From contig NW_027361757.1 in NCBI RefSeq assembly GCF_039654945.1, positions 2,728,001 to 2,792,000 on the forward strand: a stretch of 64,000 bases of DNA. The letters are read 5' to 3'. The stretch comes from Dendrobates tinctorius. Lineage: Eukaryota. The translations under genes were made by a program, and so were the position numbers. The notes below the pieces were generated by a model. That model did no database searches. It was not told the origin of the DNA and saw nothing but the letters and a program-made list of their open reading frames with translations. Numbering within the stretch: position 1 is the first letter of the stretch; each line of letters begins with the position of its first letter. Positions 11,870 to 44,700 of this stretch are shown here, piece after piece.

Positions 11870-12764
11870 TCTATAATAATAAATGCCCTAAGCAACTTCC
11901 GGTTGTAACAACTTCCGTCCAGTTGTAACCGGTGATGTCACCGCACACCTCTTTCCATGTTAACCCTCAACACACACACACCTCTCACCTTTCACCATCT
12001 CCACATACGACCCTTTCTCTCACTCCGTCTCTCATACTCACGCCATCATCGCCGCTGATCCACGATCCCCGACATCTTCTTCCGCCGGCGCCATCCTGGA
12101 TGCAGACGTCCTCCACGCCGGCGACATGTTCTTGCGGCGACGCCATTTTGGATCGGCAAAATCCCACGATAGTCAAGATGGCGTCGCCGCAAGAACATGT
12201 CGCCGGTGTGGAGGACGTCGGGATCCAAAATGGCGTCGGCGAAATCTTGCGAGATTTCGCCGACGCCATTTTGGATCCCGACGGCATCCACGTCGGCGAC
12301 ATGTTCCTGCGGTGACGCTATTTTGGATCCGCGAAATCCCGCGATACTCAAGATGGCGTCGCCGCAAGAACATGTCGCCGGCGAGGACGACGTCGGGATC
12401 CAAAATGGCGTCGGCGAAAACTCGCGAGATTTCGCCGACGCCATTTTGGATCCCGACGTCGTCTACGCCGTCGACATGTTCTTCCGGCAACGCCATCTTG
12501 ACTATCACGGGATTTCACGATACTCAAGATGGCGTCGCCGCAAGAACATGTCGCCGGCGTGGACAACGTCTGGATCCAGGATGGCGCCGGCGGAAGAAGA
12601 TGTCGGGGATCGTGGAGCAGCGGCGATAACGGCGTGAGTATGAGAGACGGAGTGAGAGAAGGGGTCGTATGTGGAGTGAAAGAGTGTGTGTGTTGAGGGT
12701 TAACATGGCAAGAGGTGTGATGCTATCGCATCCTCTCGATGCAATAGCATCGGGCCATAATCTA

Positions 12765-12765
<1 letters not shown>
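11870..12765 (+). mobile_element. Young non-autonomous Helitron with a CpG-rich internal palindrome
   Basis: A|TCTATAATAATAAA start; 3' hairpin CGATGC-AATA-GCATCG (12737-12752), then CTAG|T; internal fold-back 11943-12719. Confidence 0.85.
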
Positions 12766-12809
<44 letters not shown>

Positions 12810-12899
12810 TCTGGAAGAAAGCAGCCATGGTTTCTGATCCTATACAAAACCTTCAGAGTTTATGTAGAGGTACAAAAATGTTATATTATTAAGTCCGAA

Positions 12900-15177: not shown

Positions 15178-16880
15178 AATCTGATTGAAAGCATGCCCAG
15201 AAGGATTGAAGCACTGCTGAAAGCCAAAAATGGTTTCACAAAATACTAACAAAATAACCAAATATAAAATTTAGATTTTTAGAAGCAAAGCATTAACAAT
15301 GCAGTCACATGTTAAGAATCTGTATAACTAATATACTAAATTGTTCCAAATCAAATTTATGTATAAGATAGTCAGATAATCCTTTAATCATCCCACCATG
15401 GGGAAATTCAGAAATGGGGAAATTCATGGGGAATGTCATAGTCAAGATGATTGTCTATAAAATGATGATAGTGTCACATTTGAAGCAGTAGTGGATGGTG
15501 AGATATGGAACCAGAAAGTCAAAAGTTCAGAACACTGTTACCCTTTTGCTCATCAGTGTATTCTCACAGCCCAACACCATGCATTCATCAAGAACATTAG
15601 AATTGGCAGCTCCAACACTGGCACCATGTTCCGTTACAGATGAGAGCAGGCCAGCATTGAGGATGTCAAATATGTGAAAAAGTATGGAGACGCCATTGAG
15701 AACATTATGCTGCTTGTCCCATCATTCTGTATGACCAGTTATAGTCTGCTCTTACACAAAAGGTCTGCCACTGTAGCCATACTGCAAGTAAATCTTCATT
15801 CGATCATAAAAATAATATATTTGATATGCATGCCTGATGCTATTGCATGTCAAGCTTAACAACTCTTTGTCATATTCAGTGTCATTGATTGTTTGGAAGT
15901 GCACGTTCTGAAAAGCTTTTACAAACTTCCATGTGATAGTCAATGAGACCCTTACCACTGTTATGTACCTGGAATTAAATCTTCAGACCCTTAAGGGGGT
16001 TTTACACATAGCGATATCGCTAGCAATATCGCTAAAGCATCAACGATTTGGTGACACAGCAGCGATATCGCTATGTGTGATACTTACCTCTGACCGGCTC
16101 TCCAGCTGTCTGTCATTGATCGCGTAGCTCCATTTCTCATCGGGCGCTTCCTGCTGGGCTTCCTGCTGGCACCAAAGAGCGACACGTGGACGCGGACGGG
16201 AGGATGTCAGGATCGCCGCGTCTGAAAGGTAAGTAACAACCGCTGTATCGCTGCTGCATCGCTGTGAGATCTGCCTGTGTGGCAGCTCCCTAGTGACCAT
16301 TTAGCGATGCACCAGTGATCCTGACCGGGTCGTATCGTTGTCGGGATTGCTGGTGCATTGCTAAATGTAAAGGGGCCTTTACACTTGTGTTGAGGGCCTT
16401 GTATTACTCTTGGCGCGTGATATTGCTTGACTACAAGTAGCCATAGTATGTAATCAGATCCTGAATGATAAAGGCATTGATGTCATTGGTTGGTCTTCAC
16501 ATTTTCCAAGACCTGAATCTAATTGAGAACTAATTGGGAGCATATGTATGAATGCATCTACCATCACCAAGTAGCACCATTGTCCAGGAGCTCACTGATA
16601 CCGTAATCCAAGTCTGACAGAAGATCCTTGATGAGATGATTCCTGGTTTCATCAGGAACACTCAAAGACATTGTCTGGAGTGCATACAGGCATATGGGGT
16701 CACACACTATGAGTGAAAATTATGAGTTGCAGTCATTAGAGTAGATTAGATACTTCAGTGATCTTTGTTTTATTTTGCAATGAATAGTTTTGAATCCAGT
16801 TCTCAATTGGTCAATGATATTGTTTTTCATTGACCATTGATACATCATTTTCTTCTCTTTGGATTACAGAATTTATGTCA
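15178..16880 (+). mobile_element. Decayed Tc1-family transposase remnants, interrupted by a Harbinger MITE
   Basis: LIESMPRRIEALLKAKNGFTKY* at 15181-15249; DLNLIEN-like motif at ~16509. Confidence 0.55.
15994..16378. mobile_element. PIF/Harbinger-type MITE
   Basis: TTA TSD at 15991-15993 and 16379-16381; TIRs AGGGGGTTTTACAC / GTAAAGGGGCCT. Confidence 0.75.
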
Positions 16881-17497: not shown

Positions 17498-17519
17498 GTA
17501 AGTAAACCTATTTCCATCT

Positions 17520-17964: not shown

Positions 17965-18755
17965 CTGCAAAGGAGACATAGGGGAGGGGAGAATGAAACA
18001 AGTCGAAACATTAAACCCCCTATCACTGCAGTTCTATATTATCATTGTCACTCCCTCTGCTTCTTCTTCATACTCGCCTCACTTAAAGTTTCTTTCCTTT
18101 TCTTTATTTTTAATTATTAAGAAACTATTCATGTCAATGCATCTTACTTGCCGGTATAAAAATAGACAATATTGTTTGGGTCATAAATTAAGATTGTAAT
18201 GGCAAAGAAGGTCAAGTACTGTATATCTTCATTACTGACAGTCGAGGATCTTCTCTTGATTCCTAGTTTCTAGTATACCAAACTTATTTATACTGTTTTT
18301 CGTTTGTAGTCAAGTTTTGACTTGTGTTGCTTTAGGATAGCATTAGAAAGTTAAAGGAAAACTCAGAAAAAATACTACTTTTGTTCAGAATCCGAACTAT
18401 TGATGTTCTCTACAGGTTACTGCACTTCACAATTTTGAAAATTAGTGGAGCTTGTGCAAGCCATCACATCAGTGTTGAGGCGCAGAACAATAAAGATTTT
18501 CCGATCAGTAGTGTCTTGACAACTTAAGCAGTTGCCTGGAGAAAAGAAGACGCTCAACATGCATAGGTAACTAGTTAACGTTCACTGGACAAGTTGGGAG
18601 GGGGAAAGCATTTTGGAGATCCATTACTCATTATAAAAATGTTTAAATGCATTTTTTAATGTGTTGGCCATAGTACAGCCAGAGGCTGTCATGTGTACAA
18701 CCTGGTAGAGAAGAACATAGCTGCATTATTCATGATGTGCTAACCAGGAGCCTTA

Positions 18756-19249
18756 GGGTGGTTTCACATTAGCGCTTTTTAAGCGCACGCACGGCCGGGG
18801 GTAGCTCCGCCCCTGAGCCGGCTCTCTGCCCGGCGTGCCCGCCCCTTGCTTGTAGCGCCGCCTCCTAGCGCACAGCGGCGCCTGCGATCGGAGCACCCTA
18901 TCTTTAGCATAGGGTGCGCAGATCGTGCGCAGGCCGTGCGCTAGTTGCGCTTTGACCTGCACTGCGCACTTTTGACGGTGCGCCGGGCGCGCCAAAATCA
19001 AACTTTTTGGATTTTGGCGCGCACGGCGCACCGTCAAAAGTGCGCAGCGCAGGTCAAAGCGCAACTAGCTCATGGCCTGCGCACGATCTGCGCACCCTAT
19101 GCTAAAGATAGGGTGCGCCGATCGCAGGCGCCGCTGTGCGCTAGGAGGCGGCGCTACAAGCAAGGGGCACGCCGGGCAGAGAGCCGGCTCGGGGGCGGAG
19201 CTACCCCAGGCCGTGCGTGCGCTTAAAAAGCGCTAATGTGAAACCACCC
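18756..19249. mobile_element. Young, near-perfectly palindromic PIF/Harbinger MITE
   Basis: TTA TSD (18753-18755, 19250-19252); TIR GGGTGGTTTCACATTAGCGC; arms complementary to the centre at ~19000. Confidence 0.9.
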
Positions 19250-19455
19250 TTACATCAGCTTTATATCAGATATAAAATATAACCTTTATTGGAACTTATC
19301 TAAAACAAGACACCATACAAAATAAACAACAACCAACTGTGCCACCTACCATAGCCCTGCAAAGGAGCCCTGATATCAAACTACCTGACAGCAGAGGTTG
19401 GCACCCTAAACACAATCGAGATTGGAGCCCCCGCTCCATGACGGCTGAACCCCAA

Positions 19456-19812
19456 GGCTATGTGCCAACGTATGCAGAAAATTTCTGCATGAAAACCGGA
19501 CTCCTTCCCAGAAAATGTGCGTTTTTTTCAGTGAGTTTTTTGCGCAAAAAACACGCGTTTTGATGCGTTTTTTTCCGTGCGTCCCCAGACACATAGAAAA
19601 TAGCTAAAAACGTGGATTTTTCCACAAAATTAATGAGCATGCTGCGTTTTTTACCGCAAAGCATTTTTTCGTGGAAAAAAAATATCAATATGCACAAAAA
19701 GTGCAAAATGCATTAAAATGAAGAGGATGCTTCTTTTAAGCGATTTTTAAGCATTTTTGCCAGTAAAAACGCTTAAAAAACGTGAAAAAAACGCTTACGT
19801 GGGCACACAGCC
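19456..19812. mobile_element. PIF/Harbinger MITE inserted in a Penelope-like fragment (~19253-20146)
   Basis: TIRs GGCTATGTGCCAACGT / ACGTGGGCACACAGCC; CAA/TAA flanks. Confidence 0.75.
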
Positions 19813-20164
19813 TAAATCTCCTATATAACCCTGGACTGGTGCAGCATGCAGTCACTCAATTGACCAGGAAAGAAGCATAAAGAGGTTGCCAAAATAAAGG
19901 TAGATGGGTAGGCAACAATGAAAAATGTGCAACAAAGGTGCTAGTGACACAGACAATAAAGTAGCATGTGCAAAACAAATGAGTACCTGACTCTACTGTT
20001 CCCTGTGACTGTAAGCCTTCCTGTCAGCGGAGGTTGGCACCCTACTGGTCAGTGGAATGGCGGCCCCGCTCCACAACGGCTGTCCCTTGGAATCCCTGAT
20101 ATGATAATTCAAATTGATAACAATAAGTAAATAAAAGGGTACTCAAGTCAGCATCTGACTATTC

Positions 20165-20202
20165 ACCTCCTGATGATCCGGTTAGGAGAAACGCGTTGAG
20201 GT
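20165..20202 (+). ncRNA. Apparently intact minimal type I hammerhead ribozyme
   Basis: ACCTC-CTGATGA-TCC-GGTTA-GGA-GAAA-CGCG-TT-GAGGT: all core nucleotides present, stem I 5 bp, stem II 3 bp, palindromic stem III. Confidence 0.75.
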
Positions 20203-20396
20203 TTTTCTTATCAACTACCAACATTGAGTACCCTTTTATTTACTTACTGTTATCAATTTGAATTGTCATTAACATTTTTCTGCCACATTTGTCAATATTA
20301 CATTGCTGGCATAACCATACCTCCTATGTTATCATATTATTGTGTTGCCCTTGTTAAGGATCATTAGACATATCAGAGTTCCCACCCTACACTGCC

Positions 20397-20855
20397 TGTC
20401 TAGAAATGCACACGTGCATACAGGGTGGTAACGGTCCCACCTACACACACAGCAAATACGCACAATCTTATTGCACCGACAGGCGTGCCAAAGATCCTTT
20501 TATAGGAAGTGCCAATCAGACAGGACTTTGCTCACAGACCAATCCGGAGCCAGCACAGGACCTGAGCAGCTGACGGCCGACTACCAATGAGAGGTCATCA
20601 CCTCACGAGCATGCTTAGTAGCGCAAATCCTGGACAGCCTCAGGAACGACTACTTGCCACTGACTAATGTTAGTTGCCATAGCTGAACCTGGAGAGGCAG
20701 CAGTAACAATGCACACAGCCTGGGTCTGAGCAAGATGTTGAGACCGCTGTCCTTGCTGAGCAGCATCCACCGAGGTCGAGCCTGAATGGGAGACCACAGG
20801 AGAAGATGAAGCTTGGGATCCATTCTGTGCAGAGGGAGAATCCTGGTGCCTAACA
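20397..20855 (-). mobile_element. LTR fragment, same family as 35152-35682
   Basis: Minus strand starts TGTTAGG; long shared blocks with 35350-35682. Confidence 0.6.
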
Positions 20856-21713
20856 CACTTAGTATTAAGGTTCATAAAGCATATTCTTTAGAATTTACCT
20901 TCAATAACTTTTTAGTTTCTGATCACACCATCTTTCGTGGAATATGCTCTAGGCAGAAGTTTCTGTGATAAATCAGGGTTCATCAGCTGAAATTAGGGCA
21001 GTCATGAATTAGTGTGATTGAAGCAATAGATGTGCCATATATTCAGGATTTGTAAGCAGCACATTTCTGGGAACTCTAGAGTAGTTTTCAATTTTCCATT
21101 ACTCTGCTTTCCTCACAGTCTAATTGGTATGTGTAAAATATTGATTCGCTGCATTTATGTTGTATATCAGTGGATACTCAGTATATACATTAGAGAATGA
21201 AAAGGGATTTTTATGTGTTTGTATGAGATCGGAGGCCTCCAAAATAAACATGTTACACATTCCTTACTTGTGTTGATTAGCAAAGGGTCACAAACTTCAA
21301 ACAAAGGGAGAATAGAGGTCTAATCTCATTCAGTACAGAGACACAACTGAAAACTCAGAACAAAAGTTGCATAAACTGTTTTCACTGACTCATCCCCATT
21401 GACCTCATTTCTGCCAGTTTCCTTACTCCCGTCATTTGTGACTTATGAATTAGGCACCAGGAAATCTATTAATTAACCAAAACACTCAGTCTGGAAATGA
21501 ATGCCCTGAACACTATTTAGTAGCTTATATGCAGTCTGTAATTTTCCCAGTGGTTGAGGCCAATTTTCTTTGCAATTGAATTATCATGATGAGCTAAGAA
21601 AATTGTATTGATCCTCTAAATTTTTACTTATAATATGTCTCCTGTTATCTTATTTGTTTTTTTCCCTGAATACTCGAACATATAAATAGTAATTTAGGAG
21701 TCAATAAAAAAAA

Positions 21714-22336: not shown

Positions 22337-22951
22337 AGGGAATCTGTCACCCCATTTTTCGAGTATCAGCTGCCAGCACCACCATCAGGGGCTTATCTGC
22401 AGCATTCTGTAACGCTGTAGATAAGCCCCCGCTGTAACCTGAAAGATAAGAAAAATGAGTTAGATTATACTCACGTGGGAGCGGTCCGGTCTTGGTTCGA
22501 TGGGTGTTGCGGTCCAGCGTCTCCCATCTTCTAAGGGTGACATCCTCTTCTTTGCTGCCTGTTGTGGTTCCTGCACAGGCGCACTGCTTTGCCCTGTTGA
22601 GGGCAGAGCAGAATACTGCAGTGCACAGGCGCTGAACCTCTCCCGCACCTGCGCACTGCAGGACTCTGCTCTGTCCTCAACAGGGCAGAGCAGTGCGCCT
22701 GTGCAGGAGCCACAATGGGAAGGAAAGAAGAGGACGTCACCATTAGAAGATGGGAGGCGCCGGACCGGACCGTGACACCCATCGGACCAAAACCGGACCC
22801 AGACCGCCCCTGGGTGAGTATAATCTAACACATTTTTCCTATCTTTCAAGTTACATCTGGGGCTTATCTACAGCATTACAGAATGCTGCAGATAAGCCCC
22901 TGATGGCGGTGCTGGCAGCTGATAATAGAAAAATGGGGTGACAGATACCCT
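22337..22951. mobile_element. Palindromic T2-family (Kolobok-type) MITE
   Basis: TTAA TSD (22333-22336, 22952-22955); TIRs AGGGAATCTGTCACC / GGTGACAGATACCCT; ~300-bp complementary arms. Confidence 0.9.
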
Positions 22952-23302: not shown

Positions 23303-23330
23303 CTATGAGCTAGAACAGAAACGTAATGTG

Positions 23331-26760: not shown

Positions 26761-29700
26761 TAGTGTTGAGCTTTCCGATACCGCAAGTATCGGGTATCGG
26801 CTGATATTTGCCGTATCGGAATTCCGATACCGAGTACCGATACGTTTTTCATATCGGATACCGGAATCGGAAGTCCAAAATGCAATGAGCCACTTTTGTG
26901 GCTCTGATTGGCTGCCGAAATTACGTCATCATGATGCGCTGTCTGTGCGCATCATGATGCGCCGTCAGTTCGGGCCTTTGGGGGGGCTGTGCCGACTGTC
27001 CGGGGGTCTGTACCGGCCTGCCGGTGGTCTGTGCAGGCTCCGGGGGTCTGTGCCGGCCTGCCGGGGGGCTGTGCCGGCCTGCCGGTGGTCTATGCAGGCT
27101 CCGGTGGTCTGTGCCGGCCTGCCGGGGGGCTGAGCCGGCCTGCTGGTGGTCTGTGCAGGCTCCGGGGGTCTGTGCCGGCCTGCCAGGGGGCTGTGCCGGC
27201 CTGCCGGTGGTCTGTGCAGGCTCCGGTGGTCTGTGCCGGCCTGCCGGGGGGCTGTGCCGGCCTGCCGGTGGTCTGTGCAGGCTCCGGGGGTCTGTGCAGG
27301 CATCGTCCGATGGGACTACAAGTCCCATCGGGCGATGCCTGCTACCATGACAGTGATTGACACATTAGCCAATGATGGGACAGTAGCAGTCCCATCATCC
27401 GGCTAATGTGTTGAATGTACAAAAAAAAAAATAAAAAAAAAAAATTACATGCTACATACATGCTACATACATACAACATGCATACTACATATATACTACA
27501 TGTAACATACTACATGCAACATGCATACTACATACATGCTACATACTACATGCATGCTACATACATGCTACATACTACATACATGCTACACACATAATAC
27601 ATATACTACATGCATGCAACATACATACAACATATATACTACATGCATGCAACATGCATACTACATATATACTATATATACTACATGTAACATACATACT
27701 ATATATACTACATGCTACATACATGCAACATACATACTACATACATGCTACATACATAATACATATTTACTACATGCATGCAACATACATACAACATATA
27801 TACTACATGCATGCAACATGCATACTACATATATACTATATATACTACATGTAACATGCATACTACATATATACTACATGCTACATACATACAACATACA
27901 TACTACATACATGCTACATACATACACACTACATGCTACATACATGCAACATACATGCTACATACTACATACATACTACATATATACCACATGCATGCAA
28001 CATGCATACTACATATATACTGCATATATACTACATGCATGCAACATACATATATACTACATACAATACATACATATAGACATACAGTACATATAACATA
28101 GAGTACATACTCACCGTCACTTGTCACTTTGATCCCCGAAGCCATTGTCCCCTTGAGGAATTTCCCACGCAGCAATGGCATAAAGTGAGACTAGGGACTT
28201 TTTTTTTTTAAAGTGGTGGAGGAATACAGTGCGGAAGGATACCTACCTTCCGTCATTGTATTCCTGGAGCTGGTAGAGAACGGTAGCATCAGCTGATGCT
28301 GCTGTTCTCCACGCAAGATGGACGTGGGACCCTCGTGGACTTCTGCGGATCGGGGTAAGTATATTGGTGTTTTTTTATTTTGATATTTATTCCTCAGGCG
28401 ACAATGGCTTCGGGGATCAAAGTGACAAGTGACGGTGAGTATGTACTCTATGTTATATGTACTGTATGTCTATATGTATGTATTGTATGTAGTATATACA
28501 GTATGTATGTTGCATGCATGTAGTATATATGCAGTATATATGTAGTATGCATGTTGCATGCATGTGGTATATATGTAGTATGTATGTAGCATGTATGTAG
28601 TATGTAGCATGTATGTAGTATGTATGTTGCATGTATGTTGCATGTAGTATATATGTAGTATGTATGTTACATGTAGTATATATAGTATATATGTAGTATG
28701 CATGTTGCATGCATGTAGTATATATGTTGTATGTATGTTGCATGCATGTAGTAAATATGTTATATGTATGTTGCATGCATGTAGTATATATGTATTATGT
28801 ATGTAGTATGTATGTAGCATGTATGTACTATGTATGTTGCATGTATGTAGCATGTAGTATATATGTAGTATGTATGTTGCATGCATGTAGTACATATGTT
28901 GTATGTATGTTGCATGCATGTAGTATATATGTAGCATGTATGTAGTATGTAGCATGTAGTATATATGTAGTATGTATGTTACATGTAGTATATATAGTAT
29001 ATATGTAGTATGCATGTTGCATGCATGTAGTATATATGTTGTATGTATGTTGCATGCATGTAGTATATATGTATTATGTATGTAGCATGTATGTAGTATG
29101 TATGTAGCATGTATGTAGTATGTAGCATGTATGTAGTATGCATGTTGCATGTAGTATATATGTAGTATGTATGTTACATGTAGTATATATGTAGTATGCA
29201 TGTTGTATGTATGTAGCATGTAAATTTTTTTTTTTTCTTTTTTTTTTACATTCAACACATTAGCCGGATGATGGGACTACTACTGTCCCATCATTGGCTA
29301 ATGTGTCAATCACTGTCATGGTAGCAGGCATCGCCCGATGGGACTTGTAGTCCCATCGGACGATGCCTGCACAGACCCCCGGAGCCTGCACAGCCCACCG
29401 GCAGGCCGGCACAGACCACCGGAGCCTGCACAGGCCACTGGCAGGCCGGCACAGACCACCGGAACCTGCACAGACCACAGCTCCCCGTCAGGCCGGCACA
29501 GACCCCCGGAGCCTGCACAGACCACCGGCAGGCCGGCACAGCCCCCCGGCAGGCCGGCACAGACCACCGGAGCCTGCACAGACCCCCCGGCAGGCCGGCA
29601 CAGCCCCCCGAAAGGCCCGTACAGACCCCAGAGAGGCTGTACAAGGCAAAAATAGGGTTTTTCTTATTCCGATACCGGAAGTCCCATAGACTTGAATGGG

Positions 29701-29801
29701 ACTTCCGGTATAGGAATCGGCGATACCCGATATTTTTTTTAGATCTGCCGATACCATCCGATCCGATACTTTTAAGTATCGGACGGTATCGCTCAACACT
29801 A
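26761..29801. mobile_element. 3.0-kb non-autonomous hAT element with palindromic minisatellite/microsatellite arms
   Basis: TIRs TAGTGTTGAGC / GCTCAACACTA; perfect 8-bp TSD CTCACAAC (26753-26760, 29802-29809). Confidence 0.92.
27445..29221. repeat. Inverted pair of complex (TACA/CATG)n microsatellites (27445-28095 and 28445-29221)
   Basis: Directly visible. Confidence 0.9.
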
Positions 29802-32299: not shown

Positions 32300-34809
32300 C
32301 AGTAGCGTAGCTACTGGGGGCAGAGGGGGTGGTAGCCCACCCCCAATACAGTTACATTCTGCGGCAGAGCAGGGAGAATCGATGTCCCTGCTCTGCCGCC
32401 TGGCAGCTATGGGCCCCTGAGCAGGTGGGGGGCCCGATGCCAGCAGTGGGCCCCCTACCTGTCATCGATCGCAGGTTCAGCTGTATAGGCATCCAGCTGA
32501 TACAGCTGACTGCAGTGATGGGAGAAGGAGTGAGCACTCCTTCTCCCATCATCTCCCTCTCGCTGATAGCGGGTGCGATGGCGTTACTTCCCGGCGCCCG
32601 CTGTCAGGAGATGAGCGGGAGCAGTGAGAAGCGCAGGAGCAAGAGAGGTGAGTGTTGGATTTATTTATGGGGGTGCAGGATACTACAGTCTGCCTATGGG
32701 GGGCTGCCTTATACTACAGTCTGCCTATAAGGGATCGGGAGGCTGCCTTATACTACAGTATGCCTATAGGGGATGGGGGGTTGCCTTATACTACAGTCTG
32801 CCTATAGGGGATGGGCGGGCTGCCTTAGACTACAGTCTGCCTATAGGGGATGGGGGGCTGCCTTAGACTACAGTCTGCTTATAGGGGATGGGGGGCTGCC
32901 TTATACTACAGTCTGCCTATAGGGGATGGGGGATACTGCCTTATACTACAGTCTGCCTACAGGGTGGGGGTGCTGCCTTATACTACAGTCTGCCTATAGG
33001 GTAGGGGTGCTGCCTTATACTACAGTCTGCCTATTGGGGATGGGGGGCTGCCTTATACTACAGTCTGCCTATAGGGGATGGGGGGGCTGCCTTATACTAC
33101 AGTCTGCCTATAGGGGATGGGGGCTGCCTTACACTACAGTCTGCCTATGGGGGGGATGCTGCCTTACATTACAGTCTGCTTATGGGGGGCTGCAATCTAC
33201 TATTGAGTCTGCCTATGGGGGGCTGCAATATTGTCATGGTCCAGTCCGGAGTTTATTTTCTGCTGTCTTCACTCTAGACTGGTCATGCGGGGGTTAATCT
33301 CCTCAGCCTCATTCTGGAGCTAGCTGGGCTATTTCAGTCTGTCACAGCCTGATGACCAATGTTAGTCATAGCTCAAACTTCCAGTTTAGAGCCTCTTACC
33401 CTTGTACCTTGGTGATCCTCCTGCCTTTGACTTGTATCCACGTGTATGACCCGGACTGATCTTTGACCCCGTCTCTTGGTATTCGTCTCTGCCGCTACAT
33501 GGTATTTGATTCCTCGGTTTGCACCCCAACCACGTATTTCGTCTCACGTTTTTGGACCCGTGCTCATGTTTTGGCTTTCTGACCCTTGGCTTGGTATTTT
33601 GACTACATGTATTGCTGCTGCTTCTAGTACGACTGCTCGTGATAGTTTCTGACTCGGTTCGTCTGACCATTCTCTCTCGTTACCTGTGACACCTGTGCAG
33701 TTGCTCAGTGTTGCTACCCGTAGTGTGTAACCTCTCTTCCCTCACCAGCTCCCCCTGGTGGAGGTTTCTGTACATTTATACTGTAGTGTCTGCCTATGGG
33801 GGCTGCATTATACTATATTGAGGACTATCTGGTGTATTATACTATATGGAGGCTATCTAGGGGGCCATCATACAGTGTGGAGATTACAGTGAGGGGGCCA
33901 TCATACAATGTGGAGGTTACAGTGAGGGGTCATCATACAGTGTTGGAGCCATCATTGGGGGATACTAAGGGGTTAGTATGTATACAGTGAGGTGGAATTA
34001 TGATGTGTATAGGGGAGCTGTACAGGGGGGGAGACTCAGGACAATATTAAATGTAAAGTGGGCACTTATTGTTATAGGGGAACTCAGATTACTGTGACTG
34101 TCAAACGGGGCACACAGAGGGCATTATTACATTCTAAAGGACAAAATGTGGGCACTGTTTTCTAGGGCACTTGCACCCAACATTACTATATTATAGCGGG
34201 ATGCTTTAGAATTTAGAGGGCACACAGAACCACACAATGCAGTAGGTGAAGTAATAGGGACACATACAGCAGCAGCGGCTCAGCATTGGGGTATCAGGTG
34301 CAGTAATATGGACACATACAGCAGCAGCGGCTCAGCATTGGGATATCAGGTGCAGTAATAGGGACACATATGGCAGCAGCGGCTCAGCATTGGGGTATCA
34401 GCATCCCATGGTGATGGGACTGGAATATGAGAAGTGAAACGTGTCTTTGTTGTATTCTCTGTAGCCGAGTCCTGGCTGGAGATGTTGTCATTGTCAGTCT
34501 GGGCCAGATGGAAAAGATGTGAAAAGTGAACGATTCCATCAGAAAGAACGTCGGTGGTAAGTCGCCAACTATAACTGTGCAGTAATCATTTACAGTATAT
34601 GTTTTGTAGGACTGGTATTTACCAATGACCATATGACGGTAATATCCACGTTGGTCTTTATATAGAGATTATTTTCAGTAAGAGCGCAGTCATCTCCTAC
34701 ATCCACTATTAATGTAGAGTGCACCACTGAGTTGTAATCAAAGTTACCTGGTTAGGGGCCCACTCAGAAGTTTCGCCCTCCCCGAACCAAAACCCTAGGT
34801 ACGTCTCTG
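32300..34809. mobile_element. Non-autonomous hAT element with minisatellites and a nested LTR-like fragment (33232-33774)
   Basis: TIRs CAGTAGCGTAGCTA / TAGGTACGTCTCTG; perfect 8-bp TSD CTGCTTAT (32292-32299, 34810-34817); ~37-bp array at 32680-33230; 52-bp x3 array at 34245-34400. Confidence 0.85.
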
Positions 34810-35682: not shown

Positions 35683-35896
35683 CCTCCTTGCATCACTTAC
35701 TGTAAGTATCCCTCACCAGTGATCCTTCTTTATGGCTAAAGATGAGCGAATTTTATTGGGTCCCTGCTTATTCGGCAAGCTATAGCGCTTACCAAATAAG
35801 TTACAGCGGAACCCGTATACATGGAGCGCTCCGGGTGATCATCTGTCCGGTGCCGCAGCTGCATGTGTTGTGGCTGTGTGACAGTCACAGCACATA

Positions 35897-37683
35897 CAGT
35901 GGGTACGGAAAGTATTCAGACCTCTTTAAATGTTTCACTCTTTGTTTCATTGCAGCCATTTGGTAAATTCAAAAAAGGTTCATTTTTTTCTCATTATTGT
36001 ACACTCTGCACCCCATCTTGACTGAAAAAAACAGAAATGTAGAAATTTTTGCAAATTTATTAAAAAAGAAAAACTGAAATATCACATGGTCAGAAGTATT
36101 CAGACCCTTTGCTCAGTATTGAGTAGAAGCACCCTTTTGAGCTAATGCAGCCATGAGTCTTCTTGGGAATGATGCTGGTGCTCAGTGAGCCGCATGTGGA
36201 AAGCATGTGGGTCACCTGGTATGGCGTCAGTGAAAGTCCTAAAGCAGGGAGAGCGCGAATGCACACTACTGCAGGTCATGGTTAGAGAAAGGGAATACCG
36301 AGCATGTGCATAAGGCAAAAGATTCCATGAATGCGCACGCATATAACGGCAAGTTTTTCACACCTGGATTTGGGGATTCCCTGTGATTCTTCCTTGCAGA
36401 TCCTCTCCAGCTCCATCAGGTTAGATGGTGAACATTGGTGGACAACCATTTTCAGGTCTCTCCAGAGATGCTCAATTGGGTTTAGGTCAGGGCTCTGCCT
36501 GGGCCAGTCAAGAATGGTCACAGAGTTGCTCTGAAACCACTCCTTTGTTATTTTAGCTGTGTTCTTAGAGTCATTGTTTTGTTGGAAGGTGAACCTTCGG
36601 CCAAGTCTGAGGTCCAGAGCACTCTGGAAGAGGTTTTCATCCAGAATATCTCTGTAATTGGCCGCATTCATGTTTCCTTCAATAGCAACCAGTTGTCCTG
36701 TTCCTGCAGCTGAAAAACACACCCATAACATGATGCTGCCACCGCCATGTTTAACTGTTGGGATTGTATTGGGTAGGTATTGAGCAGTGCCTGGTTTTCT
36801 CCACACATACCGCTTAGAATTATCATCAAAAAGTTCTATCTTCATCTCATCAGACCAGAGAATCTTTTTTCTCTTAATCTGGGATTCCTTCATGTGTTTT
36901 TTAGCAAACTCTATGTGGGCTTTCATATGTCTGGCACTGAGGAGAGGCTACTATAAAGGCCTGGCTGGTGGAGGGCTGCAGTGATAGTTGACTTTGTGGA
37001 ACTTTCTCCCATCTCCCTACTGCATCTGTGGAGCCCAGCCACAGTGATCTTGGGGTTCTTCTTTACCTCTCTCACTAAGGCTCTTCTCCCACAATTGCTC
37101 AGATTGGCTGGAAGGCCAGGTCTAGGAAGACTTCTGGTGGTCCCAAACTTCTTCCATTTAAGTATAATGGAGACCACTGTGCTCTTAGGAACCTTGAGTA
37201 CTGCAGAAATTCTTTTGTAACCAGATCTGTGCCTTGCCTCAATTTTGTCTCTGAGCTCCTTGGCCAGTTCCTTTGACTTCATGATCTCATTTGGTCTGAC
37301 ATGCACTGTGACCTGTGAGCTCTTATATACTGTAGACAGGTGTGTGCCTTTGCAAATCAAGTCCTATCAGTTTAATTAAACACAGCTGGACTCTAATGAA
37401 GGAGTAGAACCATCTCAAGGAGGATCACAAGGAAATAGAAAGCATGTGACTTAAATATGAGTAGCTGAGCAAAGGGTCTGAATACTTATGACCATGTGAC
37501 ATTTCAGTCTTTCTATTTTAATAAATTTGGAAAAATTTCTACACTTCTGTTTTTTCAGTCAAGATGGGGTGCAGAGTGTATATTAATGAGAAAAAAAATG
37601 AGCTTTTTGGAATTTACCAAATGGCTGCAATGAAACAAAGAGTGAAAAGTTTAAAGGGGTCTTAATACTTTCCATACCCACTG
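35897..37683 (-). mobile_element. Full-length Tc1-like transposon with long TIRs
   Basis: TA|CAGTGGGTACGGAAAGTATT ... AATACTTTCCATACCCACTG|TA; TIRs over 200 bp. Confidence 0.92.
36113..37282 (-). pseudogene. Tc1 (DD34E) transposase pseudogene
   Basis: MKSKELAKELRDKI..., WSDE, VKHGGGSIMLW, FQQNND, SPDLNPIEHLW; frameshift at ~36950 and an insertion at 36176-36347. Confidence 0.92.
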
Positions 37684-40600
37684 TACATGGAGAGCCTGTG
37701 TATTGGGCTCTCCATGGATGTGTTGTGACTATGACACAGCCGCGACACATGCAGATGCGGAGCCGAACAGCTGATCAGATGGCGCACTCCATGTATTAGG
37801 GTTCCCGCTGTAGCTTATTCGATGAGGGCTATAGCTTGCCGAATAAACAGGGACCCGATCAAATTCACTCACCTCTATTTATGACATGGCCATGGTATAA
37901 AGCTCAGTGTCACAATAAATTATATTTCCTGACAACCAGTAAGCTTGTAAGTTTTTGACTGTGGCCCCCGATAGTAGATGTTTTCCAAAGACAACTCAAT
38001 TTAAAGATAAAGTAAAAGTATACATGAGATGGGCACACAACGTCAAACACAAATATAGTAATGTTTACCCTCTTACAACATAGTCACCTAACGTAAAAAT
38101 AGACATTTTACTGCATTCTCATATCACCTCTCTCCCACTTTCCATTTAATAAACATAAGTCCTCTAGTAATTCTCACTCTCGTATAAATTCTGCAGCTGA
38201 CTGAATTAGTTCACTTATTACTACACAAAATATATCCATGGTAGGAATTAAAGATATATACTTCTTCACCGAGTCACCAAGGAAAAGCAGACAAATATCT
38301 AGAATAATGGAAATCTGATTGGAATATATGCTCTAAATAAAATATTACTGATTATAAACTTTGTAATCTCGAGTATTGCAAAAATTCAACAAAATTGTAC
38401 AGACCATCTTTAAGACTGACACAACCGCCTTTGGCTTCATTGTTTGTCATGATGGTTTTTTTTGCTTTAAGGCTTTTGGTGCAAGGATGGTCCTGTGACG
38501 CAAAGAGCACGAAAGGATATGCAACAAACAAGGATTGCATAACAAGGTCTTTGTGACATGGGGTCAGAGAGGAAACAAAGTAGCTATTGTATAGCCGGAC
38601 AACTAAGATCACCTTCAAGAAAATACTATGGGATTTGTGAGTAAAGAAGCATGGAGTATGAACAATGATTAATATGTGTTGTAACTTGATTATAATGCTA
38701 TAATGCTAGTGTTTGTTACATAACTAGCCATGCAGTTGGTTAGTAAAACATACTAATACCAATTACTGATTCCATATTATGCTTCAAAGTAAAATAAGAT
38801 ACAGAAAAGTTTTCATTATTAAGAATTTCAGGCTATTTCCTCCGTGATACAAATTTTTCTTATGCATTTATGATAAAATACCCTGATGTATATTATGTGA
38901 AGATTACAATTTAGAACATTCTAGCTTTTTCTGGTGAGTTAAAGGAAATTCACTGAGAGCACAACCAAATCATAGATGTGTACAGTGGCATAACTTGTAG
39001 CTCGTGGGCCCTTTTGCAGAAGTCCCAACAGTGCTCACATTTATTGCAGGTGTTTAACCACTTTATGACCTTGGACTTATCGATATGTCCAGGTCGTCTT
39101 GGACCTTGAGCGTATGAATACATCAAGGCCGATCGCCACCTGATTTCAACTTATTCTGACAGCTGTCACTCGGCACTCAGTGCCAGGAGCCGTGCCGCAA
39201 CGCTCCCAGGACTTTAACTTCCTAAATACTGAGATCGAAATCGATTGCAGCATTTAGAGAGAAGGCAGAGGGAGGAAGCCCCCTCTGCCTTTGTGATCAA
39301 CCTGCAAAAAGTGAAAATCTCATAGTGGGAAAAAGTAACAAAAGGTCAACAAAAAAAAAGGTAAATCACAAAATAGTAATAATAATAATAATAAAAATAT
39401 TGTACTCATAAATAAATATTTTCATGAAAAAAAAGTATACATATTTGGTATTGCTGCATCTGGAACGTCCCTATCTATAAAACTGTCAAACTAGTTAACC
39501 CCTTTAGTGAACACCGTAAAAAAAAAAAAATGAGGCAAAAATGATGCATTATCATCATACCACCAAACAAAAAGTGGAATAAAACGTGATCAAAAAGACG
39601 AATGTAAATAAAAATGATATCGCTGAAAACATCATCTTGTCCAGCAAAAGCAAGCTGCCATATAGCTCAATGAGAGGGAAAAAAGTTACAGCTATGAAAA
39701 ATTATTATTTTTTCTATGAAACAGGTTTTATTGTGTAAAAGTGTAAAAACATAAAAAAACAATATAAATGGGTTATTGCTGTAAAAGCACTCACCCGAAT
39801 AATAAAGCTGCCTTATCAATTTTACCACATGCGGAACGGCATAAAAAAACATTCCTGAATTACTGGTGTTTGTTTATTCTGCCTTCCAATCATCGGAATA
39901 GAAGGTGATCAAAAAATGACATGTGCCTGAAAATGGTACCAATAAAAACATCAACTTGTCCCACAAAAAGCAAGCTATCACAAGACTCTGTGGGCCAAAA
40001 AATTAAAAAGTTATAGCTTTCAAAATATGGCGATGCAAAAAGTAGTTTTTGCAAAAAAAGGCATCTAGTATTTCTGTAATCACACTGACCCAAAGAATAA
40101 AGTCATCTAATCACTTATACTGCCCAATGAGCAGTGTAAAAAATAAATAAAACCAATTCAACACCAGCTGTTGATTTGTTCATTCTGACTCCCAAAGATT
40201 GCAGTAATGCTCAGTTCACATGTATTCTTTGCTCTACCCTGAACGCTTACATCGGGGTTTTCATGTAAATCTCTGAAATGCGTGATTTAGACGAAACCTC
40301 AGGTGGAAGATTCCCTATAATGAGGCAAATGGTGGCACTGTGGACACTGTCTGACCTTTGATCCAGTGGTGTCCATCTTTTTAGGTGTGCATAAAAGTCA
40401 GCCACAGTTTTGCGTACTTCTGAAAAGAAGAACAATGCTGAACAGAGGCCAGACAGAGTCCATAGTAACTCTGCTGCAGCATTACAGTGAGTGTCTCCTT
40501 CGGGGATTTCATCTAAATCATATAACTCACTGGATAAATGTGATCCCAAACATTATATAGAATGTTCCCAACAAAAGCTTCAAATCAATCTACAAAAAAA

Positions 40601-42314
40601 GCAAATCCCCACTCAGGTCCGTCACCTGCAAATGGATATTTATGAGCTTCCATGTTACTGGTAGCACAAAGACTCGATCTGGGAAAGTGCTCACCCCCAA
40701 AAGAAAGCCAGCTAATTTTGTGCTCCCAAATCCAAATAACCCCTCTCTTCTGAGCACGACTGTGCCTAAACCACAGTTAGCATCCACATGTTTGGCATTT
40801 CTGTAGCAAAGAGAGTTTGCCTAATTTACAGATGCATGTCTCCAGAAGCACAAACTGGGCACAACATACTGGTCATTACAATGGACTGGTCATGACAGCG
40901 TACTAGTCACTGCAACATTCTGGTCACTACAACGGTAGTTTGCAATTTTCACTCAGGAACATCCACTGCTGCTTGTTTCTGGAAAACTCATGGAGTCAAA
41001 ATCACCACTACATCTGTAGGTACGATTTCTAAAATGGGGTCACTTGAGGGGAGATTCTGCTCTTCTTGCACTTAGGGCTCTGTATATGTAGTCTGCAAAC
41101 TATTCTAGGAAAATCTGCGCTCCAAGAAGCAAATAGTGCTCTGTCCCTCCCGAGTCTCACTGTGTGGCTAAGCAGTACTGTGCAGCCGTACAGTTGTGCT
41201 CAAAAGTTTAAATACAACGGCAGAATTTTTGCTTTCTTGGCCTTTTTTCACAGAATATGAATGATAACTAGTGTTGAGCATTCCGATACTGCAAATATCG
41301 GGTATCGGCCGATATTCGCTCTATCGGAATTCTGATACCGAGTACCGATATTTTTTCAATATCGGATACCGGAATCATAATGCAATGAGCCACTGTTGTG
41401 GCTGTGATTGGCTGCTGAAATGATGTCATCATGATGCGCGGTCTGTGCGGGCCTGCCGGGGGTCTGTGTGGGCCTGCCGGGGGTCTGTGCCGGCTGCCGG
41501 GGGGTCTGTGCCGGCTGCCGGCGGTCTGTACGGGCCTGCCGGGGGTCTGTGCCTGCTGCGGGGGTCTGTGCTGGCTGCCGGGGGTCTGTGCCGCCTGCCG
41601 GCGGTCTGTACGGGCCTGCCAGGGGTCTGTGTCGGCTGCCGGGGGGGTCTGTGCTGGCTGCCAGCGGTCTGTACGGGCCTGCCGGGGGTCTGTGTGTGTG
41701 CAGGCATCGTCCGATTGGACTACAAGTCCCATCGGGTGATGCCTGCTACAATGACAGTGATTGACACATTAGCCAATGATGGGACAGTAGTAGTCCCATC
41801 ATCCGGCTAATGTGTTGAATGTAAATAAAAAACAAAAAAAATACATACTACATACATACAACATACATACTACATACTACATGCATACTTCATATATACT
41901 ACATTCATACAACATACATACATACTACATATATTCTACATTCATACAGCATACATACTACATACATACTACATTCATACAGCATACATACATACTACAT
42001 ACATACTACATATATACTACATTCATACAGCATACATACATACTACATATATACATTCATACAGCATACATACATACTACATATATACAACATTCATACA
42101 ACATACATACATACTACATACATACTACATACAGTATATACTACATTCATACAGCATACATACATACTATATATATACTACATTCATACAGCATACATAC
42201 ATACTACATACATACTACATATATACTACATTCATACAGCATACATACATACTACATATATGCTACATATATACATTCATACAGCATACATACATACTAC
42301 ATACATACTACATA

Positions 42315-43213
42315 CACTCACTGGCCACTTTATTAGGTACACCTGTCCAACTGTGTGTTAAGACTTAATTTCTAATCAGCCAATCACATGGCGGCAACTC
42401 AGTGCATTTAGGCATGTAGACATGGTCAAGACAATCTCCTGCAGTTCAAACCGAGCATCAGTATGGGGAAGAAAGGTGATTTGAGTGCCTTTGAACGTGG
42501 CATGATTGTTGGTGCCAGAAGGGCTGGTCTGAGTATTTCAGAAACTGCTGATCTACTGGGATTTTCACGCACAACCATCTCTAGGGTTTACAGAGAATGG
42601 TCCGAAAAAGAAAAAAAATCCAGTGAGCGGCAGTTCTGTGGCCGGAAATGCCTTGTTGATGCCAGAGGTCAGAGGAGAATGGGCATACTGGTTCGAGCTG
42701 ATAGAAAGGCAACAGTGACTCAAATTGCCACCCGTTACAACCAAGGTAGGCAGAAGAGCATCTCTGAACGCACAGTGCGTCGAACTTTGAGGCAGATGGG
42801 CTACAGCAGCAGAAGACCACACTGGGTACCACTCCTCTCAGCTAAGAACAGGCATCTGATGGCTACTTTCAGCAGGATAATGCGCCATGTCATAAAGCTC
42901 GAATCATCTCAGATTGGTTTCTTGAACATGACAATGAGTTCACTGTACTCAAATGGCCTCCTCAGTCACCAGATCTCAATCCAATAGAGCATCTTTGGGA
43001 TGTAGTGGAACGGGAGATTCGCATCAGGGATGTGCAGCCGACAAATCTGCTCCAACTGTGTGATGCCATCATGTCAATATGGTCCAAAATCTCTGAGGAA
43101 TGCTTCCAGCACCTTGTTGAATCTCTGCCACGAAGAATTGAGGCAGTTCTGAAGGCAAAAGGGGGTCCAACCCGTTACTAGCATGGTGTACCTAATAAAG
43201 TGGCCAGTGAGTG
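42315..43213 (+). mobile_element. Internally deleted Tc1-like element (transposase remnant 42463-43181)
   Basis: TA|CACTCACTGGCCACTTTATTAGGTACACC TIRs; MGKKGDLSAFERGMIVGARRAG N-terminus fused out of frame at ~42853 to QQDNAPCH...SPDLNPIEHLW...KAKGGPTRY*. Confidence 0.92.
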
Positions 43214-44700
43214 TATATACTACATTCATACAGCATACATACTACATACATACTACATTCATACAGCATACATACATACTACATACATACTACATATATA
43301 CTACATTCATACAGCATACATACATACTACATATATGCTACATATATACATTCATACAGCATACATACATACTACATATATACAACATTCATACAACATA
43401 CATACTACATATATACTACATTCATACAGCATACATACATACTACATATATACTACATTCATACAGCATACATACATACTACATACATACTACATATATA
43501 CTACATTCATACAGCATACATACATACTACATATATACTACATTCATACAGCATACATACACACTACATACTGTATATACAACATTCATACAACATACAT
43601 ACTACATACATACTACATATATACTACATTCATACAACATACTTACATACTACATACATACTACATATATATAACATTCATACATGCTACATATATACTA
43701 CATTCATACAACATACATGCTACATACATACTACATTCATACAGCATACATACTACATATATACTACATTCATACAGCATACATACATACATACAACATA
43801 CATAAAACATGCTACAGATATACTACATACATACTACATATATACTACATTCATACAGCATACATACATACTACATACATACTACATATACACTACATTC
43901 ATACAGCATACATACATACTACATACATACATACATACAACATACATAAAACACGCTACAGATATACTACATACAATACATTCATACAATACATACATAT
44001 AGACATACAGTGCATATAACATAGAGTACATACTCACCATTACTTGTCACATTGTTCCCCGAAGCCAGTGTCATCTGTGAAAAAAATAAGAAAAAAACAA
44101 ATCACCAAATACTCCCTGTTCCGCAGAAATCCACGAGTGTCCCATGCCGATCTCCTTGGAGAACAGCAGCATCAGCTGATGCAACCGTTCTCTAGGGGCT
44201 GCAGGAATCCAATGACGGGAGATAGGTATCCTTCCGTACTGTATTCCTCCGCCACTGTAAAAAAAAATAGTCCCTAGTCTCACTTTTGGCATTGCTGTGT
44301 GAGAAAGTTCACACGCAGCTTTTGCCATAAAGTGAGACTAGGGACTATTTTTTTTACAGTGGCAGAGGAATACAGTGCGGAAGAATACCTACCTCCCGTC
44401 ATTTGATTCCTGGAGCCCCTAGAGAACGGTCGCATCAGCTGATGCTGCTGTTCTCCACGGGAAATCGGCATGGGACACTCGTGGATTTCTGTGGAACAGG
44501 GAGTATTTGGTGGTTTGTTTTTTTCATATTTTTTTCACAGATGACACTGGCTTTGGGGATCAAAGTGACAAGTAATGGTGAGTATGTCCTCTATGTTATA
44601 TGTACTGTATGTCTATATGTATGTATTGTATGAATGCATGAATGTATTGTATGTAGTATGTATATAGTACGTATGTATGTTATATGAATGTAGTATGTAT

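Follow-up and report, generated by a model that had tools for sequence, protein, structure and literature searches.

Four families of non-autonomous DNA transposons in Dendrobates tinctorius carry splice-donor motifs that point out of the element, which raises the question of whether these motifs are working parts of the elements, inert relics or products of chance. The window analysed here is a stretch of 64,000 nucleotides (contig NW_027361757.1, positions 2,728,001 to 2,792,000), and all positions given below refer to it. According to the original prediction, palindromic MITEs of four superfamilies converge in this window on outward-facing consensus splice donors that flank a GC-rich core. 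All 11 of the 11 GT(G/A)AGT hexamers on which this was based were found at the expected positions and on the expected strand, each facing away from the centre of its element (Table 1). Assignment to the superfamilies Helitron, Harbinger, T2/Kolobok and hAT is supported by structural hallmarks. Comparison of the families by blastn did not reveal any cross-family similarity, confirming their independence and ruling out common ancestry of the donor-bearing families.

Table 1 Positions of the elements and of their donor-like sites in the window. A slash marks the putative exon–intron border.
Feature	Position	Strand	Details
Non-autonomous Helitron	11870..12765		5′ TC, 3′ CTAG, hairpin 12720-12752; insertion within a (TA)n tract, between A and T
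Helitron inner palindrome	11944..12719		776 nt, arms 88% alike
Helitron left donor-like site, GGC/GTGAGTAT	12036..12041	-	8 contiguous U1 pairs; C at -1; 9-mer PWM 5.05
Helitron right donor-like site	12634..12639	+	mirror copy of the left site; outward
Harbinger-type MITE	15994..16378		385 nt; terminal hairpins, middle non-palindromic
Harbinger left donor, GAG/GTAAGTAT	16082..16087	-	10 contiguous U1 pairs; second-best score of 7,469 GT sites
Harbinger right donor, AAG/GTAAGTAA	16229..16234	+	9 contiguous U1 pairs; best score of 7,469 GT sites
T2/Kolobok-type palindromic MITE	22337..22951		615 nt; TTAA duplication; AGGGA terminus
T2 left donor, CAC/GTGAGTAT	22469..22474	-	outward
T2 right donor, TGG/GTGAGTAT	22814..22819	+	9 contiguous U1 pairs
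Non-autonomous hAT copy 1	26761..29801		3,041 nt; TIR TAGTGTTGAGC; 8-bp duplication CTCACAAC
hAT copy 1 left donor, ACG/GTGAGTAT	28109..28114	-	9 U1 pairs; core/microsatellite border
hAT copy 1 right set	28355..28440	+	GGG/GTAAGTAT (28355), 43-nt intron-like, 37-nt exon-like (28398-28434), ACG/GTGAGTAT (28435)
GAG/GTGAGTGT donor	32648..32653	+	partner at 31599-31604(-)
hAT copy 2	41269..46369		5,101 nt; TIR TAGTGTTGAGC; 8-bp duplication ATGATAAC
hAT copy 2 left donor, ATG/GTGAGTAT	44032..44037	-	outward; exon-like 44038-44074
hAT copy 2 right donor	44578..44583	+	mirror copy of the left donor; exon-like 44541-44577

The terms of the prediction apply unevenly to the four families. If MITE denotes an element shorter than about 800 bp with TIRs and a TSD but no coding capacity, the name fits the T2 and Harbinger elements, but neither the hAT copies, with their greater length, nor the Helitron, which is without TIRs. 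Palindromy was seen in the Helitron, T2 and hAT cores and not in the Harbinger element, where only a 12-nt inverted repeat extends across both sites. Doubling of each site by palindromy therefore holds for the three fold-back families; the two Harbinger donors are independent because the element lacks a palindrome across the sites, and this makes them more remarkable, not less. A GC-rich core is present in the Helitron, Harbinger and T2 elements (GC 0.60-0.61) but not in the hAT copies (0.46-0.475, with the window at 0.426). The donors follow the consensus in the Harbinger and hAT elements and do so moderately in T2, whereas the exon side of the Helitron site is weak.

A Helitron is recognised by a 5′ TC, a 3′ CTRR, a subterminal 3′ hairpin and insertion between A and T, without TIR or TSD. 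The element here starts with TC at 11870, ends with CTAG at 12762-12765 followed by T, and has neither TIR nor TSD. The Harbinger-type MITE is flanked by a TTA target duplication (15991-15993 and 16379-16381), in line with the 3-bp TWA duplication of this superfamily, and its ends, AGGGGGTTTTACA and AGGCCCCTTTACA, share 9 of 13 positions before continuing into TAGCGAT-type sequence. The T2 palindrome (22333-22955, arms 86% alike) includes TTAA duplications at 22333-22336 and 22952-22955, as described for T2 target sites (PMC6004289), and the terminal AGGRR is represented by AGGGA on the left and, in reverse complement, by AGGGT on the right, one position off. T2 is short, non-coding and present in high copy: in a DNA run, its summed contig depth is 190,000-400,000 as compared with 8.8 for unique flank, and the left edge of the element is a breakpoint for 397 contigs. 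Both hAT copies share an identical 11-nt TIR at all ends together with 8-bp duplications. In the interior of copy 1, arrays of 21-nt and 11-nt repeats fold back on either side of a core at approximately 28100-28445; copy 2, with a core palindrome at 43911-44701 (arms 89% alike), hosts a nested Tc1 element (approximately 42316-43212) and a nested 884-nt palindrome (44691-45574). Within the window, no further copies of the families were found beyond the two of hAT.

It could be argued that the donors merely reflect chance and ascertainment, the hexamer being frequent, palindromy doubling any match and only elements with outward pairs having been listed, in which case the motifs would be meaningless. 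The bare hexamer behaves in this way. GTRAGT occurs about once per 1.1 kb with both strands counted, and enrichment was rejected, with 57 occurrences in the window versus 63 ± 8 in shuffles; window-wide, divergent pairs less than 1 kb apart are about as common as convergent ones. The proposed convergence holds for the four families, but the list was selective: an outward donor is missing from approximately half of the window's elements with inverted repeats, no good outward donor was found in the palindromes at 18755-19250, 44691-45574 and 50167-51180 or in the two Tc1 elements of the window, and one of the latter carries a strong inward donor at 37872(-). When scored with a 9-mer splice model (with donor and acceptor matrices written by hand), only the Harbinger sites reach individual significance, the T2, hAT and Helitron sites being non-significant with P values of 0.07-0.9. 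Similarly, a scan for exon-like pairs returned 59 in the window, and those within transposons are not distinct as a class.

Chance accounts less well for the extent of U1 pairing beyond the hexamer. Contiguous U1 pairs number 9-10 at the Harbinger and hAT sites and in the right arm of T2, with the Helitron sites at 8; the flagged sites are far better U1 matches than the remaining GTRAGT sites in the window. Sites with at least 9 contiguous pairs number 10 in the whole window, and 8 of these lie within flagged elements, all facing outward. In tests of the extended motif that were formulated post hoc, with the data already seen, such pairing was found at 5 of 6 independent flagged GTRAGT sites versus 2 of 46 others (conditional Fisher p=4.7e-5), and GGTRAGTAT was found to occur 9 times, 6 of them independent, as opposed to 1.21 ± 1.06 expected (maximum 5) in 400 dinucleotide shuffles, an excess of approximately 5-fold once duplicates are collapsed. 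Comparison with shuffled sequence gives no excess for the bare hexamer and places extended U1 complementarity above chance. Part of the extension has a local source in one family, as the adjoining TATG-type microsatellite may be the source of AT at +7/+8 in the hAT site. The Harbinger donors are the two best in the window, divergent, 142 nt apart and not palindrome-made (arm-shuffle P≤0.003), and not one palindromic element in the window has a mirrored pair facing inward. At the level of sequence, the sites combine a donor consensus with a match to the U1 5′ end, as expected of a functional 5′ splice site. Because extended U1 pairing is concentrated in the elements and GGTRAGTAT is in excess, the outward donor motif is probably a real family feature. 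For T2, approximately 157 DNA contigs from other copies match as far as the inner edge of the hexamer, which suggests that the donor hexamer is probably a feature of this family. We consider chance and ascertainment a somewhat unlikely explanation. An AAGATGG upstream of the donors was dropped as a common element, since its conservation does not extend to hAT copy 2.

If the motif is real, the composition of the interiors bears on what it might do. A CpG-island promoter is taken here as at least 200 bp with GC of at least 0.5 and a CpG observed/expected ratio of at least 0.6. Among the cores compared, only the 592 nt between the Helitron donors answer to this description (GC 0.60, CpG observed/expected 1.58), and by its make-up the Helitron core is the only one to resemble such a promoter. 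It consists of 175-nt units, and within it lie 10 of the 11 AAGATGGCG/YY1-type motifs of the window; ETS-type motifs are found at the 5′ end of the element, outside the core. The 141 nt between the Harbinger donors have a GC of 0.61 and a CpG ratio of 0.99, the only other promoter-like ratio; neither the T2 core (0.58) nor the hAT cores are CpG-island-like. As read from these values, an architecture of promoter, first exon and U1 site would be compatible with two of the four families (Helitron and Harbinger), and the case for it appears weak in T2, with its low ratio, and in hAT, which is not GC-rich. We rate a promoter/U1 module as likelier for the former two than for the latter. Between the Helitron arms, CpG decay exceeds other transitions by only about 2-fold, versus 4-27-fold in the other palindromes, and this slower decay may be a weak hint of absent methylation or a promoter-like state.

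Transcript evidence was available for T2, as read-derived contigs were compared over 18700-24440 only, a range that includes this element and skips the long tandem arrays. RNA-type contigs of two species pass unspliced through the T2 right donor. Among the joints and loose ends listed, from a set larger by 616 joints and 4,033 loose ends, none uses a T2 donor in the right direction, in assembled contigs that cannot show transcript starts. The joints listed for this stretch are DNA-level variants, with no exon-inclusion joints among them, and the best-supported loose ends listed for the RNA run include the T2 outer edge. Because the RNA contigs listed over T2 show no splicing from the donors, a promoter-plus-first-exon role for these elements is unproven.

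Unspliced passage through the T2 donor would also be expected if the interiors were inert relics, that is, host exon–intron junctions or gene 5′ ends that were captured and folded back, with the donors passive and unused. Helitron capture of a promoter together with a splice donor is documented (PMC4778049), and stretches resembling gene structure lie in two further families. Outward of the T2 left donor lies a complete 36-nt intron-like stretch with CTAAC, a pyrimidine tract and a CAG, extending to 22439, whose acceptor scores 12.4 (P=0.005). In three of the four hAT arms, a 37-nt piece lies between an acceptor and a donor. A source for the interiors did not emerge, however: word-based protein searches gave no relatives and no parent gene for the T2 core ORF, no relatives for the Helitron core ORF (short N-terminal pieces being invisible to this search) and no parent gene fragment of the kind expected from HelibatN3-type capture, and an exact-protein look-up gave no match for a Harbinger ORF. 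Capture followed by fold-back predicts inward pairs as often as outward ones, yet 3 of 3 palindromes face outward, a small sample, and the two opposed Harbinger donors could not come from one captured exon. Inert relics strike us as unlikely.

The exon-like arrangement in the hAT arms is open to another interpretation, in which the donors have their effect on host transcripts passing through the element and not on RNA started within it. They might do so as an orientation-independent cassette exon, since the reverse-complemented donor is rich in pyrimidines and, provided an AG lies close by, would yield acceptor, core and donor on both strands; or as an unspliced U1 decoy, suppressing premature polyadenylation or causing nuclear retention. 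The acceptor-like site 37 nt upstream of the donor at 44032 scores 12.9, the strongest among the exon-like pairs of the window, of which this 37-nt unit is the top one. Exon-like units of 119-130 nt are present in both T2 arms (acceptors 9.9-10.1), and one of 134 nt on the minus strand of the Harbinger element (acceptor 9.0). Moreover, 9-10 contiguous U1 pairs exceed those of typical donors and are reminiscent of U1 sites by which polyadenylation is blocked or RNA retained (PMC3826338, PMC9074902). Save for hAT copy 2, the upstream acceptors are individually unremarkable (P 0.013-0.41), and in the acceptor scan the Helitron had no upstream acceptor making an exon-like unit. The cassette model was consequently dropped as an account of all four families. 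Intronic cassettes would also be harmful, their selective advantage is not obvious, and the T2 joints listed lack exon inclusion. Action on read-through transcripts appears to us distinctly unlikely, slightly more so than inert relics.

We favour the view, with a probability of roughly 0.38, that four unrelated families of non-autonomous DNA transposons have inherited these donors and that the donors work in the manner of HelibatN3. Each family would carry a 5′ splice-site motif complementary to U1 snRNA that borders its GC-rich interior on the outside, and fold-back duplication would have produced the mirror pair in three of them. The interior would constitute a promoter plus first-exon-like module, either captured from a gene 5′ end or evolved within the element; from the window alone, convergence is not distinguishable from the capture of gene 5′ ends by each family independently. 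RNA leaving the element, from an internal start or by read-through, would meet a strong U1 site that marks the exon end, leading to splicing to the next acceptor outside the element. Transcription from the cores, binding of U1 and an effect on splicing or silencing are what such a working would predict. At present the evidence falls between a used module and a relic or chance, with motif quality above chance. An extended form, in which unrelated families of the frog lineage independently gained a mobile bidirectional module with a CpG/GC-rich core and hyper-complementary U1 sites that keeps copies transcriptionally open or unmethylated and scatters first exons or U1 landing pads either way, would seem improbable, and more so than any other reading considered here.

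MITEs move by cut-and-paste and do not depend on an RNA of their own. In the U1-polyadenylation-signal axis of divergent promoters, and in U1 telescripting (review, PMC3826338), a strong U1 site just downstream of the start favours productive elongation in that direction, and an outward U1 site beside a GC-rich core would follow the same logic; that axis concerns host promoters, where U1 sites are usually enriched on one side, whereas here they are found on both. Splice donors are at work in other transposable elements, to which the candidates described here can be compared. Maize Ds/dSpm termini carry splice sites, with the donor facing inward and serving to splice the element from exons, and the retroviral major splice donor downstream of the LTR serves the element's own mRNAs.

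The closest precedent is provided by Helitrons acting as exon traps after capture of a promoter together with six codons and a splice donor (PMC4778049). Bat Helitrons including HelibatN3 captured gene promoters, and trapping of downstream exons by HelibatN3 was demonstrated experimentally (PMC4778049, PMC4224331). The Helitron of the window resembles HelibatN3 in being non-autonomous and in having a promoter-type GC-rich segment, a short open stretch and an outward splice donor. In contrast, its module is palindromic, with donors both ways and C at -1, and is known from sequence. The T2 element shares its TTAA site, AGGRR terminus, high copy number and palindromic structure with the Xenopus T2-MITE/Kolobok elements, whose T2-C copies are over-represented upstream of genes; a text search of that paper gave 0 occurrences of "splicing" and "promoter" (PMC6004289). 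In Xenopus tropicalis, the MITEs hAT-N16_XT, Harbinger-N12A_XT and Kolobok-N2_XT have been domesticated as liver enhancers (PMC12676858). Compared by description, these belong to three of the superfamilies present in the window and have internal repeats, some palindromic, and a regulatory interior; they differ in being distal enhancers at nucleosome-free regions, with no splice donors, first exons or CpG cores described (PMC12676858). We found no earlier description of outward donors in MITEs in the literature.

If the donors prove real and are in use, they would furnish the whole genome, in tens of thousands of copies, with first exons or U1 sites that are independent of orientation. This would offer RNA-independent cut-and-paste transposons a route to shape vertebrate transcript starts, polyadenylation and silencing, and the precedent of the Helitron exon trap, with its single orientation, would be widened to four superfamilies. 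If they are relics or due to chance, they represent an ordinary by-product of a transposon-rich genome and a frequent hexamer.

Several other identities were considered for these sequences. A U1 snRNA pseudogene was rejected, as the match covers the first 10 nt only, which is inevitable for a perfect donor complement. An introner, or spliced-out element, was likewise rejected, since on the sense strand it is the downstream arm, and not the upstream end, that bears the donor. Rfam and tRNA scans, asking if the cores are RNA genes or if any hammerhead reaches threshold, returned only an 18S fragment at 62386-62752, and the T2 hairpin pattern had two chance-level matches in viral contigs and none in metagenome contigs. 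Finally, the donor at 32648 had been described as single, but it has a divergent partner, GAG/GTGAGTAT at 31599-31604(-). The 1,043 nt between the two sites have a GC of 0.53 and are CpG-poor, with an observed/expected ratio of 0.38.

The original prediction that palindromic MITEs of four superfamilies carry outward-facing donors (predicted 5′ splice sites, GT(G/A)AGT) around a GC-rich core was partly confirmed. All 11 quoted hexamers were found at the predicted position and strand, and in the transcript sense each consists of GC-rich exon-like sequence followed by GT(G/A)AGT, directed away from the element middle. The four superfamilies hold on the structural hallmarks of each label (TTAA duplication and terminal motif being the T2 criteria used, PMC6004289), and the flagged families show no similarity to each other by blastn. 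The window is repeat-dense and contains no N runs. Our preferred reading, held tentatively (probability about 0.4), is that the motifs are inherited modules of promoter/first-exon type, whose outward U1 sites would act as exon ends. By analogy, the nearest precedent is HelibatN3, a bat Helitron in which the NUBPL promoter was captured together with six codons and a splice donor; it traps downstream exons when mobilised, and drives chimeric transcripts in bats (PMC4778049). The Helitron found here resembles a folded, two-way form of the HelibatN3 design; however, the parent gene is identified for HelibatN3 (NUBPL), whereas none was found for this element. A literature search found no prior description of outward donors in MITEs.

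Transposable elements and other annotated features, in window coordinates
Feature	Position	Length (nt)	Hallmarks
Helitron, non-autonomous	11870-12765		5′ TC, 3′ CTAG then T; subterminal hairpin 12720-12752
Harbinger MITE	15994-16378	385	TTA both sides; terminal hairpins
T2 MITE (Kolobok-type)	22337-22951		TTAA duplications; AGGGA terminus
hAT copy 1, non-autonomous	26761-29801	3,041	11-nt TIRs; perfect 8-bp duplication
Tc1/mariner	35743-37871		Minus-strand Sleeping-Beauty-type HTH and DDE_3 remnants
hAT copy 2, non-autonomous	41269-46369	5,101	11-nt TIRs; perfect 8-bp duplication
Tc1/mariner	42316-43212		Deletion derivative, lying within hAT copy 2; TIR tips outward CCA/GTGAGTG
Autonomous-type hAT remnants	58037-60692		ORFs with BED zinc finger and hAT dimerisation domain
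18S rRNA fragment	62386-62752		Near hAT-remnant ORFs; Rfam score 72.9 bits

The description as palindromic MITEs stands in part. Most of the Helitron, which is inserted after A within a (TA)n tract, is occupied by a 776-nt palindrome (11944-12719, arm identity 88%). The term does not suit the hAT copies, at their tabulated lengths, or the Harbinger middle, which lacks a palindrome; there, inverted repetition at the two donor motifs extends over only 12 nt, and the two donors are thus independent events. The TIRs are identical in both hAT copies, the duplications being CTCACAAC and ATGATAAC, and the interior is a large Foldback-like fold-back, in which a core of 350-550 nt is flanked by 11-nt TACATAC-type arrays and, farther out, by 21-nt GC-rich repeats. 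One Tc1 and one 884-nt palindrome are nested in copy 2. Promoter-type motifs occur in the hAT subterminal regions: in the left one ATTGG (CCAAT-box) adjoins TTACGTCA (CRE-like), and the right one carries paired CCGGAAGT.

The GC-rich core was borne out for the Helitron, Harbinger and T2 elements (GC between donors 0.60, 0.61 and 0.61, respectively) but not for hAT (0.46-0.475 versus 0.426 for the window). The corresponding CpG observed/expected values are 1.58, 0.99 and 0.58, with 0.57-0.79 for hAT and 0.46 for the window; among the cores compared, the Helitron alone qualifies as a CpG island by the usual criteria. Its core also contains 10 of the window's 11 AAGATGGCG (YY1-type) motifs, and two ACTTCCG (ETS-type) motifs are located at the Helitron 5′ end. 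Between palindrome arms, differences of the CpG-to-TpG/CpA type are approximately 2-fold commoner per site than other transitions in the Helitron and 4-27-fold in T2, hAT and one unrelated palindrome, all from small numbers. Such slow CpG decay in the Helitron arms weakly hints at low germline methylation.

Chance plus selection is a somewhat unlikely alternative, and the strength of the original claim did owe much to selection. The bare hexamer is not enriched, with 57 sites on both strands compared with 63±7 in dinucleotide shuffles. When each arm was shuffled and scored with a 9-mer donor matrix (approximate vertebrate frequencies), only the Harbinger halves were individually significant (P≤0.003), with P of 0.08-0.14 for hAT, 0.13-0.26 for T2 and 0.07-0.92 for the Helitron. 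By this matrix, the Harbinger donors, divergent and 142 nt apart, rank first and second of 7,469 GT positions in the window. U1 pairing, counted as contiguous base pairs with the U1 snRNA 5′ end, is a measure set by biology as opposed to derived from the data, and it sets the flagged sites sharply apart; 10 window sites have at least 9 U1 pairs, 8 of them inside flagged elements. Among GTRAGT sites, this level is reached by 5/6 independent flagged sites versus 2/46 others (Fisher p=4.7e-5), a test which, being conditioned on the hexamer, removes the selection behind the prediction. Both this test and that of the extended motif GGTRAGTAT were picked after the sites were known, the latter motif occurring 9 times (6 after merging mirror/copy duplicates) against 1.21±1.06 expected from shuffled sequence (400 shuffles, maximum 5), which is less structured than real DNA. 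At the main hAT donor, the neighbouring TATG-type array may be the source of the AT at +7/+8. The donor motif probably represents a genuine family feature in Harbinger and hAT, and plausibly does so in T2 and the Helitron.

Further inverted-repeat elements had been left out of the original list, namely three palindromes and two Tc1. No good outward donor is present in the palindromes (18755-19250, 44691-45574 and 50167-51180) or in either Tc1. The first palindrome (496 nt, 95% self-complementary, GC 0.64, CpG observed/expected 1.11) matches T2 in abundance in the DNA run; GC-rich, abundant and donor-less, it therefore forms a natural control for the hypothesis. The third is 1 kb long and 99.6% perfect, with CAG/GTAAGC (score 11.65) at 50155, 12 nt outside and facing into it. 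A strong inward donor-like site occurs at 37872(-) in the Tc1 of 35743-37871. The predicted 'single donor' at 32648(+) proved to have a divergent partner, GAG/GTGAGTAT at 31604(-), with 10 U1 pairs. The intervening 1,043 nt have a GC of 0.53, are CpG-poor (observed/expected 0.38) and contain a 25-nt tandem array; a 38-nt array (32696-33188) follows the 31599-32653 unit. Among the top U1-type sites, just two are not in flagged transposons; one of these is CGG/GTGAGTAT at 48082-48087(-) with 9 U1 pairs, which lies outside delimited elements. Rfam identified no hammerhead at gathering score anywhere in the window.

Contigs were compared at an 80% likeness threshold over 18700-24440, which contains T2 and the donor-less control palindrome without long tandem arrays. 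The runs were X1 (DNA-type) and X19 (RNA-type) from the source species and X25 and X26 (RNA-type) from a related species; the RNA label is presumed, and all are assembled contigs, uninformative on transcript starts. Summed depth over T2 is 190,000-400,000 versus 8.8 in unique 21004-21579, and 397 DNA contigs break at the T2 left edge. A further pattern, in which 157 DNA contigs match as far as the left hexamer's inner edge before switching to right-arm-like sequence, indicates that the hexamer is probably common to many T2 copies, the left exon-side bases here being a private change. Protein-word searches, exact-protein look-up and pattern scans of viral and metagenome collections yielded nothing useful on further family copies.

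The joints and loose ends listed over this region gave no support for T2 donor use. The best-supported loose ends in RNA-type runs include the T2 outer edge (22332/22333). The sole listed joint touching a T2 donor position (22474 to 22576) deletes core sequence, and was rejected as a splice in favour of a copy variant. Joints 22359 to 22853/22854, with approximately 21-23 other letters between, occur in the DNA run as well as in RNA-type contigs; they represent a short relative sharing the T2 termini only and lacking the entire core as well as both donors. Contigs cross the T2 right donor unspliced (X19 22730-22873, X25 22648-22824). That the motifs are inert captured relics is an unlikely reading, and their action on read-through host RNA is similarly unlikely. 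For the latter there is a known basis: unspliced strong U1 sites can suppress polyadenylation or retain RNA in the nucleus (PMC3826338, PMC9074902).

Beyond its donor, the T2 left arm contains a complete 36-nt intron-like stretch with CTAAC, pyrimidine tract and CAG (acceptor score 12.4, P=0.005). The right arm no longer has this AG. In 3/4 hAT arms, the donor is preceded at a distance of 37 nt by a strong acceptor-like site, one of these forming the window's top exon-like pair. Upstream acceptors of the other flagged elements are unremarkable, with none in the Helitron, and a general cassette-exon design is thus not supported. In Xenopus, T2-C copies are over-represented in the regions upstream of genes (PMC6004289). 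Each T2 arm (22388-22429, 22859-22900) contains a 16+10+16-nt hairpin with AGATAAG (GATA-type) motifs in its stems; the element has five of these motifs, a plausible source of enhancer activity.
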